From Octopus sinensis (Eukaryota), in NCBI RefSeq assembly GCF_006345805.1, contig NC_043019.1, positions 30,689,360-30,753,359 of the forward strand: a stretch of DNA of 64,000 bases. The letters are read 5' to 3'. Below the pieces are notes generated by a model. That model was not told the origin of the DNA. It saw only the letters and a program-made list of their open reading frames with translations, and did no database searches. This document shows positions 31,901 through 37,900 of the stretch, in pieces (position 1 is the stretch's first letter; every line of letters begins with the position of its first letter). A program made the translations under genes and the position numbers.

Positions 31901-34900
31901 GCCGCTAAAAACAGAACGGGTCAAAAATGGCGTCCGGAGGAAGAAGATGATGTCTGCAACAATTCAGGTTAAAAGTCTTCGGCCAAAAGACTGCTGCTAT
32001 CAAAACCGGAGAGAGAGCGAATGAAACGTCTGCTTCTATGAAAAGCCTGCCGCTGTCTGTCGGACGCTAATGGTCAACGCTTTACGCTCCCTTGCCTCTT
32101 TGTTAAGGCTCACGCTCCCTTGCCTCTATAAGCTAAGGCCACGTCAGCAAAATTCCCTCTTTCGGACTTCGTGTATTCGCGAGAGGGCGTTGCGCGCGCG
32201 CGCTGTTGTATAGGATCACTACACGCCTAAGCTCCATGCAGTTCCGGCAGAAGGTAATGGCCACAACTTTCTCTCACTCTTTCCTCCTGCATCTTGCAGC
32301 TCACCTGAAATAGACCAGCACCCCATCCAGGTGGGGAACCTATACACCAAGGAAACTGGCCCTTATGAGCCAGGGATGGCTTGAGAAGGAACAAATATGA
32401 CAGCAGTTGAAAGACTAAAACAAAGAAACTGTGTAATACTAACTGGTTCTCCTCCCCACCAGAAAGGTTCACTGGATGTGGATGTAAAAGATTTATTCTG
32501 CCCTGGATCATACATTTCTTCATCAATGATCCCATGAGATTCTGGATACAAACCCTGAAATATAAAATAGATTCACAATCAAAATATAATCCTGCAAGTA
32601 ACATGTCTTGCATACTTGTGTATAATCACTGTGTTTTCCAATGTTTAAAAGTAGTTAAGGATTTTATTGTCCCCTCTCATGTATATTTAATTTTCATCAA
32701 AAATCGCCCTAAGCTGATTTCCTACATGTTTTATTGGATGAACTTATTATTTTCCCAGGTATGTTCATCATGCTTTTCCATCTAGATTTACCTCCAGCTA
32801 ACCCATTTGCATGCATCGTTTATGTCCTGCTTTTCTTCCGTCAACCTGTACATAACTGCACCTTCCATTTTTTGTTGTTTTTGTACTGCTTAAAGGCATG
32901 TTTCTTTCCTGCCAAGCTTACTGTTTAAACCATGTTTGTGTTCTCCCAGTCAACAGCCTTATCATTACTGGTAATTTAAACTCTTCGGTTACGTATTTGT
33001 GTGTATAAAATCGTTTTTCTTTGGAATAAAAAAAAAGTCTATCTTTACTTCTTCTTTTGCTGGGGTCTCAAATTTAGGTTAAATCAGTGTTTCTCAAAGT
33101 GGAGGCCTATGGGACGGTCGGACAAGTTGTTTTGAGAAAATTTGGTTTAAATGTATATATACAGATATATACAGACATATATACACACACACATATACAT
33201 ATGAGGGTGCATGGCCTCATGGTTAGGGTGGTATATCATTTTATTGCACAAATTATTGAAGCATGGGCTTTCTCCAAGGCAATACTAGCTGAAAGAAATT
33301 ACAGATCTGTGACCAAGTGTAATAAATTCATTTTTGTGATATAACTTAATTAGTAATCAATAAGATACTACAGAAACAATATAATAAAAAAAACAATGAA
33401 CTACTTACAGTGACTATACTGTACAGATTAGGTAAACTTTTATAAGGATAAACTGGTCGCATGTAAGATGCTTGTACACCACAGCGCTTAAGCTTTTCCA
33501 ATGCAGGCATTTTCACAAGATTTAAATTGTCTGCATTAAAATTATGCAAGGACAATAAGAGCAAAATTGGTGTTCTGCAAATGATAAGAAAAAAGAATTA
33601 ACATGTGTAAAAAGCACCAGCTGGTTGTGGTCGATGCCAGCTCTGCTGGCCCCTGTGCTGGAGGCACGAAAAAAAGCACCCACTACACTCTTGGAGTGGT
33701 TGGAATAAGGAAAGGCATCCAGCTGTAGAAACACTGCCAGATGGGATTGACAACCGATGCTGGTGTAATTACGTCCCCATAACTTAGCAGTTCAGCAAAA
33801 GAGACCGATAGAATAAGTACTAGGCTTACAAAGAATAAGTCCTGGAGTCGATTTGCTCGACTAAAGGCGGTGCTCCAACATGGTCACAGTCAAATGACTG
33901 AAACAAGTAAGAGTAAAAGAGTAAAAGAGTAAATCTTCCTAGAGTCATACTCTATTGACTGTAATAAAAGAAGATATACTGGACTATATAGCAATTGATA
34001 TACAAAAAGGATAAGCTGGTCCCAAATAGAATGTATTTGATCATATGGCTGTTCAATCAAAGTGAACTGGTACTCCGTTGGTTAAGACAACCAGGGTTCC
34101 ATTTGATCCAATCACAACCTGCTTAGGAAATTAACGTGCAAGTGACTGAACACTCTGCAGACACGTGTACCCCTCATGTAGTTCTTAGGGAGACAAAGCG
34201 TGACACAGAATGTAACAAGGCTGGCCCTTTGAAATACAGATACAACCCATTTTTGCCAGCTGAGTGGATTGGAGCAACATGAAATAAGGTCTTTTGCTCA
34301 AGGGCACAACACATCACTGGGAATTGAACTAACGGTTCTAATGGATGGAAGCACTCCGTCGGTTACGATGACGAGGGTTCTGGTTGATCCGAATCAACAG
34401 AACAGCCTGCTCATGAAATTAACATGTAAGTGGCTGAGCGCTCCACAGACACGTGTACCCTTAACGTAGTTCTCGGGGATATTCAGCGTGACACAGAGAG
34501 TGACAAGGCTGGCCCTTTGAAATACAGGTACAACAGAAACAGGAAGTAAGAGTGAGAGAAAGTTGTGGTGAAAGAGTACAGCAGGGATCACCACCATCCC
34601 TGTCGGAGCCTCGTGGAGCTTTAGGTGTTTTCGCTCAATAAACACTCACAATGCCCGGTCTGGGAATCGAAACCGCGATCCTATGACCGCTAGTCCGCTG
34701 CCCTAACCATTGGGCCATTGTGCCTCCACAGCATAACGGTTCTAATATCGTGAGTTGAATACCCTAGCTGCAAAGCCATGTGCCTTCAATCAAAGCTAAC
34801 CTGGGGATAAACAACAACATACTTTAAAGCAGAGGTTCTCAGCCATTTTTTACCTATGGGCCCCATTGACTCATCTTTTACTCAGGTAATGGGTGGGGGT

Positions 34901-37900
34901 GCTCATAACCTTTCGATGTCTAAAAACTCCTATTTTATTTTTATGATTAAATACTAATAGGGATTGTATGAGAAATTAATTAAATATTTTTTGTAATATA
35001 GAAATATAACCAGTTTATTATTTCATTTTTTTCACTTGTTTTAGTCATTTGACTGTGGCCATGCTGGAGCGCCACCCTAAAGGGTTTTAGTCAAAGAAAT
35101 CGACTCCAGGACTTATTCTTTGTAAGCCTAATACTTATTCTATCGGTCTCTTTTGCTGAACTGCTAAGTTACTGGAACGTAGGCACACCAACATCAGTTG
35201 TCAAGTGATGGTCGTGGAGCAAACACAGGCACAATGACACACATAAATTTATATATATGTATATATATATATATATATATATATATATATGCGAAGGGAT
35301 TCTTTCAGTTTCCATCAAAAACAAAATCTTATATGGACCCTGGTTAAGAACCAGAGTTTTAAAGTATTGAAAAAAAAAAACCACTTACCTTTCACATGCC
35401 TTTTCTTGAGAGCATTCTTGTTTTAACCATGGTTGAGAATTGGGCACATTCCATAGATATGGAGATAGGAAGGTCCGTTGTTTAACATTAAGACTACGGT
35501 CGAATCTGAGATTTGTCAAGTGTTCTATGTCTTGAAGACTGACAATGTTGTCAAGCAAGTATTCCCTAAAGTTCTGAAATAAGAAGAATTTTAGGAAAAT
35601 AACAATAAGAAATAAGTGGAAATTTAATGTTCAGACAATTCAATCAAACATAATGCCTATTGATTCACATTGATTTGAATTAATCATGCATTATCTCATA
35701 TCTTCAAGATCTTGATGGTGTAATTACTTAATGTAGAATAACATTGTAGGGTAGGTGTGAGAGCCTGGATCTGGTCAGTTTGAACATAAAACAGATTAAC
35801 TATTTTGGCTGGATATGGCCGGTTTAAATACTAAAGGGTTAAATTATAAGGCACAAAAAGAAAATTACTCTCCCCAGACACAACAGAAGAATTTGAATCT
35901 TTCATTCATACAAACCGGTTCTACATTTTCTATTTTTGTTTTGTTGGTATTTTATTTCTTTGACCTGAGAAAGATGAAAGGCAAAGTTGACCTAGGTAGG
36001 ATTTGAATTCAGAATGTAAAGATTTGGAACAAATACCACAAGACATTTTTCCTGATGCTCTACTGATTCTGACAAACCATTGAGAAAGCAAAACAAAAGT
36101 TGTTTCTATTTTTTTTGCCAGTGTTGTATAAGTTTATTGGCATAGAGATTACTCCATCAAATGTAATGCTTGCTTATTCATATTGCTTTGAACTAATCAT
36201 GTATTCCAGTTCTATATTTAAGAGATGAGGAATTATATACATTGTTTACATTTGACGGATATTTGTCCTCATCTTGTTTGTTGTTAAGACAACGTTTTGG
36301 CTGATAAACCCTCCAGCCTTCATCAGGTGTCTTGGGGAAATTTCGAACCTGGGTTCTCATTCCTAAGGTATTTTTCGATGTTTTTGTTGTTGTTGTTCAG
36401 GTCACTGCTTGGAATCGAACTCGGAATCTCGGGGTTAGTAGCCCATGCTCTTAACCACTACGCCATATACTCATGGGCAATGAGTGAATGGAGTGAATTT
36501 TAGGGTTTATAAATCTAATATTTTCCTATCCTTCCTTAATACCGGTTCCCATATACTACTCATATCTTCACTCAGTCTGCTTAGGAGGTTGTTGTGTCCT
36601 AGCATATGTGCTGCTTCTTTTATTTTTCGTATTTTCCACTGGTATTCCCTGTCTATTATTTTACCTTCGTCCCACAGGAGGAGGTGGTCTCCATTTTTCC
36701 ATACATGATCAGCTATATCCGATTTATCAATATCTCCTCAAATGTAAATAATGTAAATAACGATCATGGATTATCTTGCAGCATTGGGATTTTGATGAAG
36801 TAACTGATTATTATTAGGACGACATTGTAGGATAGGTGTGAAAGGCCAGATCTTGCTATTTTGAACATAAAATAGAACATTTGGGCTGGATATGGCCAGA
36901 TTAAATACTAAAAGGCTAAATATCTAATTTTGTTAAACATAGCAATTTGTCCTATTTTCAGTTATCACAAGAATCTTCTTTGAGAAACGCTGCAGTAGAA
37001 GTCAGTGCTAAAGAACTGTTGCAGTTCGGTGCTTAACGTATGGTCATTATCCAATTATTAAAAAATTACAAGGAATCAATGAAGAGGTAATGACAGAATT
37101 AGTAAAAAATCAATGTAATTGACAACGACTTAGAAAGTATTGCTCCAGCATGGTTACAGTTACCATATTTTCCAGCATATAAATGGAATTTTTCAGACCA
37201 AAATTTACAACAAAAATTCCATGTGAAATTCAGAAGGATTTGGGAAGATAGTGACAATGTTTGAATATTTAGACTATATACTATGTTGATTGTATGTCAG
37301 AGAATATGGTAATAAATGAAGCCAGGAAGAGAATAAAAGAATAAAAGAATAAAAGAGTAAAAGAATTGTTGGAATCTCTTATTTTCTTACCATGCAGTTT
37401 GTTACTTTTGGTAAATGTGGAAGAACAAATGAAATAATATCCAAGCTTGTGGAAGATTTCTGGTCTTGATTTCTTTGAAGAATTGCAAAGAAATGGGTCG
37501 GAGATGGTGGAGATGAGTCATGAAAACTGAAAATTAAAAAAAATTTTTTAATTTTGAAATTAGGGAGAAAAATGCATTTGTCTTTATTTTTCAGGGTTTA
37601 AGAATATTAGGAAAAAAAATCGTAATTTTAAATTAAAAAAATATAAAAACAAATGAAAAATTTAATCAAACATGCCTTTTTGAGAACTGGCCAAAAGTTA
37701 ACAACCGGTAATAGATGCAGGAATAAAAGAGTATCATTAACTAGATCAAAGATGCCTGACAAAGTCTTTTGGCGTTTTGTAAATTTAATTCTAATTTATA
37801 CTCATACACAAAAAGTTACCAAATTTAGCTGACTACTAAACTTTGAAGGCTGTGTCATAATTACCAAATAGTAATTAAGACTAATGTGAAGACAAATGGC

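Follow-up and report, generated by a model that had tools for sequence, protein, structure and literature searches.

A predicted octopus ENPP-type protein in which a nuclease-like domain continues into a second phosphodiesterase domain

Exons and domains of an ENPP-like gene in the window

Here we analyzed a 64,000-nucleotide stretch of the Octopus sinensis genome (RefSeq assembly GCF_006345805.1, contig NC_043019.1, positions 30,689,360 to 30,753,359 of the forward strand; "the window"), which carries part of a gene of the ENPP family of ecto-nucleotide pyrophosphatases/phosphodiesterases. Within this gene, a nuclease-like (NUC) domain, NUC1, is joined to a second phosphodiesterase (PDE) domain, PDE2. 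Using tblastn with ENPP relatives, a phase-constrained splice-site scan, and peptides from the Argonauta locus, we located 15 exons (Ea to Eo), all on the minus strand, between 55891 and 1781. Every exon has AG/GT sites and matching phases, and when joined they give 639 codons without a stop. The gene lies in AT-rich, repeat-rich DNA and extends past both window ends. The window holds its middle third, corresponding to residues ~439-1033 of the predicted O. bimaculoides orthologue XP_014771948.1 (gene LOC106870407, 2111 aa; P0299 below).

The junction is formed by exons Eg and Eh. Exon Eg (35389..35573) encodes the NUC1 C-terminus and, on the same exon, a 22-residue linker of the W..C..C type. 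Frame 0 is open throughout with no stop, and the exon ends 2 bases into a codon, bounded by a polypyrimidine/AG acceptor (...tatttcag) and a GTAAGT donor (gtaagtgg). Exon Eh (33409..33574), flanked by ...catttgcag and gtaagtag, encodes the first strand of the second PDE domain. In this exon the metal-binding Asp is replaced by His and the nucleophile Thr by Ser, and its product is 100% identical to P0299 residues 782-837. The codon split across the boundary (AG + A) reads Arg, and the phases match. The first-pass annotation, made from the DNA letters alone, had described Eg as a NUC C-terminus without a stop that splices in phase into a second PDE domain; translation and the canonical sites on both exons agree with it to the base. 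Interspersed repeats fill the intervening NUC1/PDE2 intron (33575..35388, ~1.8 kb), in which we saw no exon that encodes a start codon, a signal peptide, or a somatomedin-B (SMB) domain.

By our own estimate, an open 22-codon linker would occur by chance in AT-rich DNA with a probability of about 0.2, which is not improbable alone. A chance origin of the open junction is excluded by the 15-exon, 639-codon frame, together with the Pfam matches given below and the retention of the junction in two other octopods. NUC1 ends without a stop in three octopod genomes, and the junction is kept in the predicted proteins P0001 (from Argonauta hians), P0298, and P0299. The O. bimaculoides model XP_052832021.1 likewise contains it. 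At the level of genomic sequence, these comparisons establish the NUC1-to-PDE2 junction as a genuine, conserved, phase-compatible exon junction. A search of the 117-aa junction peptide against an index of 5.8 billion proteins returned no match, likely since only cluster representatives are shown there and the octopus representative lacks this region.

Pfam identifies a PF01223-related domain, Endonuclease_NS, at residues 101-306 of the window model (35.5 bits, cut-off 23) and a Phosphodiest domain (PF01663) at 343-638 (206 bits, E = 1.3e-60, profile positions 1-323 of 342). The order in the window, NUC followed by PDE, is the reverse of the canonical ENPP order, and no Somatomedin_B (PF01033) match was found in the window model. 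The first 60 residues comprise the end of a preceding PDE domain with its NNGT motif and then a lasso-type linker, which spans ~90 residues between that motif and NUC1. The upstream exons had been read in the first-pass annotation as the end of a first PDE and a whole NUC domain; we place the NNGT motif in exon 55891-55710 and the NUC domain in six exons from 49593 to 35389, as that reading had it. When the first half of PDE2 was compared with Protein Data Bank (PDB) sequences, the best matches were ENPP2, ENPP1, and ENPP3, with E values of ~1e-37 to 1e-35.

Upstream of the junction, exon Ea (55710..55891) carries the end of PDE1 and the start of the lasso loop; it was found by tblastn and is 88% identical to P0299 residues 439-503. 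Exon Eb (49384..49593) holds the remaining lasso loop and the start of NUC1 (HLPFLVLSS) and is 96% identical to P0299 504-573. The rest of NUC1 before Eg is encoded by Ec (42383..42500, reading ...GHLFNL and placed by splice sites, phase, and the P0299 match), Ed (40260..40328, found with an Argonauta NUC2 peptide and 92% identical to P0299), Ee (39015..39132, with the EF-hand-like motif DQNQDGHAD), and Ef (37391..37526, PTHFFAILQ...), the last two resting on tblastn, splice sites, and the P0299 match. A longer version of Ec (42500-42332) joined directly to Ee was ruled out by the Argonauta NUC2 peptide, which revealed Ed at 40328-40260; this was later confirmed by P0299.

Downstream of Eh, the PDE2 domain continues in Ei (32444..32554, ...WWGGEP) and Ej (27948..28008), both supported by tblastn, splice sites, and phase. 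The 34-nt micro-exon Ek (26143..26176) came from the phase-constrained splice-site scan, and its peptide is identical in P0299. In El (21755..21869) the Asp ligand of the PDxxGH motif is replaced by Asn, and in Em (10945..11053) the DH metal ligands are kept. Exon En (5380..5529), found by the splice scan, adds 50 residues of PDE2, and Eo (1781..1937; tblastn and P0299 match) is the last exon before the gene continues past the window start.

The introns are rich in repeats. The junction intron contains a direct repeat pair of at least 133 nt (34114-34246 and 34402-34534, 83% identical) and an inverted pair of 119 + 43 nt (33747-33908 against 35034-35204, ~90% complementary); ARAGORN found no tRNA-like gene in it. 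The element of the inverted pair recurs near 62450, 59650, 56650, 49050, 38050, 12600, and 8350, as judged by eye from open reading frame (ORF) lists and off-target tblastn matches, no repeat search having been run. Minus-strand intron ORFs at 50700-52700, 47813-48235, and 57494-57952 resemble broken mobile-element genes by eye, the features being a zinc knuckle (CX2CX4HX4C) near 51.9 kb, a stretch near 51.0 kb that is reminiscent of reverse transcriptase, and another at 48.2 kb that recalls a transposase; none of these ORFs has a Pfam match at E <= 0.01, which leaves the resemblance unconfirmed. Microsatellite and low-complexity tracts (TG/CA, AT, AAT, GGN) are abundant, for example at 7050-7900, 10000-12500, 16000-17900, 53600-54400, and 57050-57350. 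Because such tracts give long spurious ORFs on both strands, ORF length alone is uninformative in the window.

Multi-module relatives and the repeated linker

The predicted orthologue P0299 matches the window exons throughout at 87-100% amino-acid identity, including the junction and micro-exon Ek (exon En is treated below), and it confirms exons Ec, Ed, and Ek, which had been found manually. Intron DNA is 82-95% identical between the window and O. bimaculoides. The P0299 N-terminus has a short charged segment, which we read as cytoplasmic, a hydrophobic stretch IFALFGIMTLLCTAIGVGVGI that is a putative membrane anchor, and a Thr/Pro-rich stalk. This stretch precedes module 1 and is the sole candidate for a membrane anchor or secretion signal in the protein. 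Module counts for P0299 and its relatives were obtained with Pfam and phmmer. P0299 consists of PDE1 (~91-462), NUC1 (~536-752), PDE2 (784-1101), NUC2 (~1210-1387), PDE3 (1422-1804), and NUC3 (1865-2111), and Pfam gives no SMB (PF01033) match anywhere in it.

From these comparisons, we consider it quite likely that the window covers the middle of a single large minus-strand gene for a membrane-anchored protein with the architecture PDE1-lasso-NUC1/PDE2-lasso-NUC2/PDE3-lasso-NUC3. The first-pass annotation had proposed that PDE-NUC modules repeat within one polypeptide and that no SMB domains separate them. Support for this comes from the matching phases, the linker on the NUC exon, the intron without a start, signal, or SMB sequence, the octopod models, and Pfam, which finds the anticipated endonuclease-like domain between PDE domains: NUC then PDE in the window, and three PDE and three NUC domains in P0299. 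The three modules of the octopus protein extend that earlier account. The same architecture, for which a search of mollusc and other invertebrate proteomes had been suggested, is present in predicted proteins from octopus, scallop, mussel, snails, limpet, annelids, a priapulid, and a nematode.

When the databases were searched with a rough version of the model, the best relative was Argonauta hians Ahia01_001367300 (P0001; 344 aa, 61% identity), and this annotated model itself runs from the C-terminal half of a NUC domain through the linker into a PDE domain. At the Argonauta locus (L001), exon boundaries and phases agree with those of the window, and the domains encoded are a PDE C-terminus, NUC1, PDE2, and the beginning of another NUC. 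A search with the concatenated Argonauta exons returned only distant ENPPs, and the Argonauta gene was followed within L001. A second open NUC1-end/linker exon, ~80% identical (...NIVNVRAIERLTLLNSSQILTVKQRTFTPTDPWPSSSILPWIQQQECPQRNTCER), lies at L001:27815-27997 in the PDE2 intron between the GLYPESHG and IWKTAE exons. This copy, for which the window has no counterpart, might be an alternative exon or a pseudo-exon, or else result from a duplication in the assembly.

With P0001 as query, an exhaustive HMMER search gave long proteins that were matched across the junction in one stretch. Three PDE and three NUC domains are predicted in Mizuhopecten yessoensis LOC110442364 (2199-2243 aa), Dreissena polymorpha LOC127876504 (2234-2238 aa), and Nucella lapillus KAL8580376.1 (1950 aa). 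Two modules are predicted in Patella caerulea KAK6178834.1 (1434 aa), Owenia fusiformis CAH1773184.1, Helobdella robusta XP_009015219.1, Priapulus caudatus XP_014666537.1, and Caenorhabditis auriculariae CAD6196519.1. The full-length scallop and Dreissena proteins gave no SMB match with Pfam and have an N-terminal anchor and a Ser/Thr-rich stalk, and several isoforms are predicted at both loci. We also found a Logan contig (L002, SRR23372228_118729; 7,671 nt, 28.5% G+C) that encodes PDE-NUC-PDE-NUC almost without introns. An uninterrupted 702-aa ORF (3007-5115) in it crosses a NUC-to-PDE junction, so that at least one organism needs no splicing to read through from NUC to PDE.

A neighbour-joining tree of the PDE modules supported only three groups: bivalve module 1 (99%), the nematode pair (100%), and Nucella module 3 with Patella module 2 (82%). 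The octopus modules were unplaced. From the tree, the nematode duplication looks independent.

To compare the linkers, the 62 residues before every PDE module were lined up. After each NUC the pattern is ...RLRTxLP..LW, 8-15 variable residues, W-x-(D/E)-x-x-C, 5-9 residues, C, 3-6 residues, and then the PDE strand (LLL.SLDGFRA.YL). This ...LW...W..C..C... pattern was seen at 14 NUC-to-PDE junctions in 11 species from four phyla. Vertebrate ENPP1 and ENPP3 have a W..EC....QCP.GF motif between the second SMB domain (SMB2) and PDE. The alignment shows the linker after each NUC to be homologous, as judged by sequence, to the stretch that connects SMB2 and PDE in vertebrate ENPP1-3. Since the window linker matches this pre-PDE motif, the terminal exon of the NUC domain has absorbed the linker of the next unit. 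By the same alignment, the repeated unit is defined as [W..C..C linker + PDE + lasso + NUC].

The linker cysteines appear to have partners in the PDE domain. Two PDE cysteines, in KRCG and ENCIN, occur in the window PDE2 and in every module with a cysteine-bearing linker. Octopus module 1 (P0299) and Patella module 1 (P0151) lack both the linker cysteines and the two PDE cysteines (E/S and T/T in place of C/C). We take the two PDE cysteines to be the disulfide partners of the linker cysteines in autotaxin structures. Because the four cysteines co-vary, the two linker cysteines are likely disulfide-bonded to the KRCG and ENCIN cysteines of the PDE that follows.

The split RefSeq annotation and alternative readings

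In the current O. bimaculoides RefSeq annotation, P0299 has been replaced by two models, XP_052832021.1 ("venom phosphodiesterase 2") and XP_052831915.1 ("venom phosphodiesterase 2-like"). The first stops inside PDE2, ending in ...VSDH plus 25 unrelated residues, and the second begins with MLLKC and then runs on in exon Eo. Exon En is missing from these two models and from P0299. Its splice sites are good and its phases are right, and its residues fill in a stretch, common to every ENPP, that lies between the DHG motif and the ...C..N.H... strand. The Argonauta counterpart of En lies at L001:34594-34752, with 56% identity and the same phases. At the position of En, O. bimaculoides CM046623.1 (~31.446-31.448 Mb; L003:6086-7981) has a gap of 1,896 N, the flanks of which align to window positions ~6765 and ~4605. 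Both the RefSeq split and the 50-residue skip in XP_014771948.1 probably arise because this assembly gap covers En, and the split is probably most simply explained as an assembly artefact. The window thus gives an uninterrupted PDE2, including the exon missing from the O. bimaculoides reference, and we argue that the two RefSeq genes are one.

Several points weigh against the reading of one gene for one three-module protein. All of the protein models that support it are computational predictions. RefSeq cuts the locus into two genes inside PDE2, with alternative last and first exons, and shorter transcripts may therefore be made. A truncated isoform may end after NUC1 by read-through of the Eg donor. 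The module tree is too poorly resolved to equate the octopus triplication with the bivalve one, and the spacer or binding role that we propose below for the dead modules is one we only infer.

The alternative that survives best is that the locus is one gene with several products, in which truncated isoforms are made besides or instead of the full protein. These might end after NUC1 by intron retention, end inside PDE2, or start from an internal promoter and lack the N-terminus. Counterparts of both alternative RefSeq exons do exist in the window, on the minus strand: the last exon of XP_052832021.1 at ~9040-8970, and the first coding exon of XP_052831915.1 at ~2816-2804 (ATGTTATTGAAGT, MLLK-C). 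An unspliced Eg donor would read to a stop directly after ...ACER, and the multiple isoforms predicted in scallop and zebra mussel point the same way. However, the alternative last exon is only 72% conserved, compared with 90-100% for the coding exons, and its O. bimaculoides stop is not kept in the window, where the frame reads on. Each of the RefSeq products would contain only half of a PDE fold, and the second would have no secretion signal; the split also coincides with the assembly gap. We consider this alternative unlikely.

Even less probable is that the locus holds separate ENPP genes, duplicated head to tail and fused only by gene predictors and by our reading of the splice sites, with PDE2 transcribed from its own promoter. 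Tandem duplicates are common, predictors do fuse such genes, every supporting model is a prediction, and the newest RefSeq annotation of an octopus gives two genes. Against this, the missing stop at the end of NUC1 recurs in all three octopod genomes, and PDE2 has no Met, signal peptide, or anchor of its own, the intron before it containing only repeats. The pre-PDE cysteine linker is encoded on the NUC exon. The RefSeq cut falls inside PDE2 rather than at the NUC/PDE border, and at an assembly gap. In L002 an intron-free ORF crosses the same type of junction, and the junction motif is kept across four phyla.

Catalytic residues, proposed mechanism, and known systems

Catalytic residues are given in human ENPP1 numbering, with D218, D376, H380, D423, H424, and H535 as metal ligands, Thr256 as the nucleophile, and Asn277. 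Counting along ENPP1 places a metal ligand at the His of GxHGxDN and rules out the His of NNGTHG. The window PDE2 has D218H, T256S, and D376N, and retains N277, H380, D423, and H424. The H535 position lies beyond the window and is Ile in PDE2 of the O. bimaculoides orthologue. At five catalytic positions, orthologue PDE1 carries G, S, V, E, and S, whereas all catalytic residues are present in orthologue PDE3. In octopod PDE1 and PDE2, most of the seven metal ligands are lost and Ser replaces the Thr nucleophile. Residues at ligand positions differ between the window and Argonauta: Argonauta PDE2 keeps Asp at D376 and has Asn at H380. Scallop has all catalytic residues in 3/3 PDE modules. In Dreissena the losses are confined to two ligands of module 2, and in Patella it is module 1 that is degenerate.

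Between the window and Argonauta, frames are intact over 468 aligned codons covering NUC1, the linker, and PDE2, with dN (nonsynonymous divergence) ~0.3 and dS (synonymous divergence) saturated by the NG86 method. Omega, the ratio of the two, is at most ~0.17 where it is measurable, in NUC1, and this is an upper bound only. The intact frames, the dN of ~0.3 against a saturated dS, and the omega in NUC1 show, on sequence comparison, that the degenerate modules are maintained by purifying selection. That modules 1 and 2 are decaying relics or pseudo-exons and only module 3 works is highly improbable: PDE1 and PDE2 have lost most catalytic residues and octopus modules 1 and 2 sit on long branches in the module tree, but frames are intact in the window, Argonauta, and O. 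bimaculoides, omega is low, the structural cysteines, EF-hand-like motif, and DH pair are kept, and the only candidate anchor or secretion signal precedes module 1.

The octopus protein would be a membrane-anchored ecto-nucleotide pyrophosphatase/phosphodiesterase whose only competent active site, judging by its residues, lies in the distal C-terminal module. As in the solved ENPP1-3 structures (PMC8808174), the long lasso loop most likely holds each PDE against the NUC that follows it, and consecutive units would be tied together by the short cysteine linker. The pair of dead PDE-NUC modules could then act as folded, disulfide-locked spacer or binding units in place of the SMB domains of vertebrate ENPP1/3. 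Because scallop has three intact sites, the ancestral form was probably a multi-site enzyme.

More tentatively, the multi-module ENPPs may be an ancient, conserved class of protostome ecto-enzymes with divided labour among their modules. The scallop protein might have three active sites of different specificities. The dead modules of octopods might be pseudoenzymes that bind a ligand (a nucleotide, cyclic dinucleotide, or lysolipid), or they might serve in adhesion or as a stalk, regulating or positioning the active C-terminal module. This is a possibility that we hold to be rather doubtful. If true, such a division of labour would be a function without a counterpart in the vertebrate ENPP family.

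No account of multi-module ENPPs turned up in full-text literature searches by accession, by family and taxon, or by automatic name. In public databases such proteins are named "uncharacterized protein", "venom phosphodiesterase 2", or "ENPP1-3/EXOG-like ... domain-containing protein". The octopus protein belongs to a known family, of which it is an undescribed variant, and is not new in category; its sequences, including the exact junction, are already public. This analysis adds exon En, which completes PDE2, and offers an explanation for the RefSeq split; it also defines the repeated unit with its linker and shows where catalytic residues have been lost. Many protostomes are predicted to string two or three PDE-NUC units on one membrane-anchored chain without SMB domains, and octopods offer a natural setting in which to study roles of the PDE-NUC unit besides catalysis. 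These results also bear on how automatic names such as "venom phosphodiesterase 2" are read in cephalopod transcriptome papers.

The closest known sequence is the O. bimaculoides LOC106870407 product itself, which has the NUC1-to-PDE2 junction as in the window; however, its models lack exon En, and they are uncharacterised and carry automatic names. The predicted multi-module ENPPs of other protostomes join their PDE-NUC units by the same ...LW...W..C..C... linker, but they are only 30-40% identical to the window. ENPP1-3 consist of one PDE, one inert NUC, and two SMB domains according to a 2021 review of the family that does not mention invertebrates (PMC8808174). The octopus protein has in common with vertebrate ENPP1 and ENPP3 the PDE fold, the lasso loop, an inactive NUC with an EF-hand-like motif, and the pre-PDE cysteine linker. 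It differs in having three units rather than one PDE-NUC unit plus two SMB domains, with no SMB and with two of the three PDE sites degenerate.

Among PDB sequences, autotaxin (ENPP2) matches the first half of PDE2 best (E = 7e-38), and both have a PNLY variant after the nucleophile, although PDE2 is without the catalytic Asp and Thr. The segment between the WPG motif and the next conserved helix is 23 residues long in PDE2; we take it to be ~29 residues in ENPP1 and ~12 in autotaxin. Tandem catalytic domains, some of them inactive, also occur in the receptor tyrosine phosphatases (D1/D2), somatic ACE, and lactase-phlorizin hydrolase. As an analogy that implies no homology, these proteins likewise duplicate a whole enzyme unit within one membrane-anchored chain and keep inactive copies, though their folds are unrelated to that of the octopus protein.

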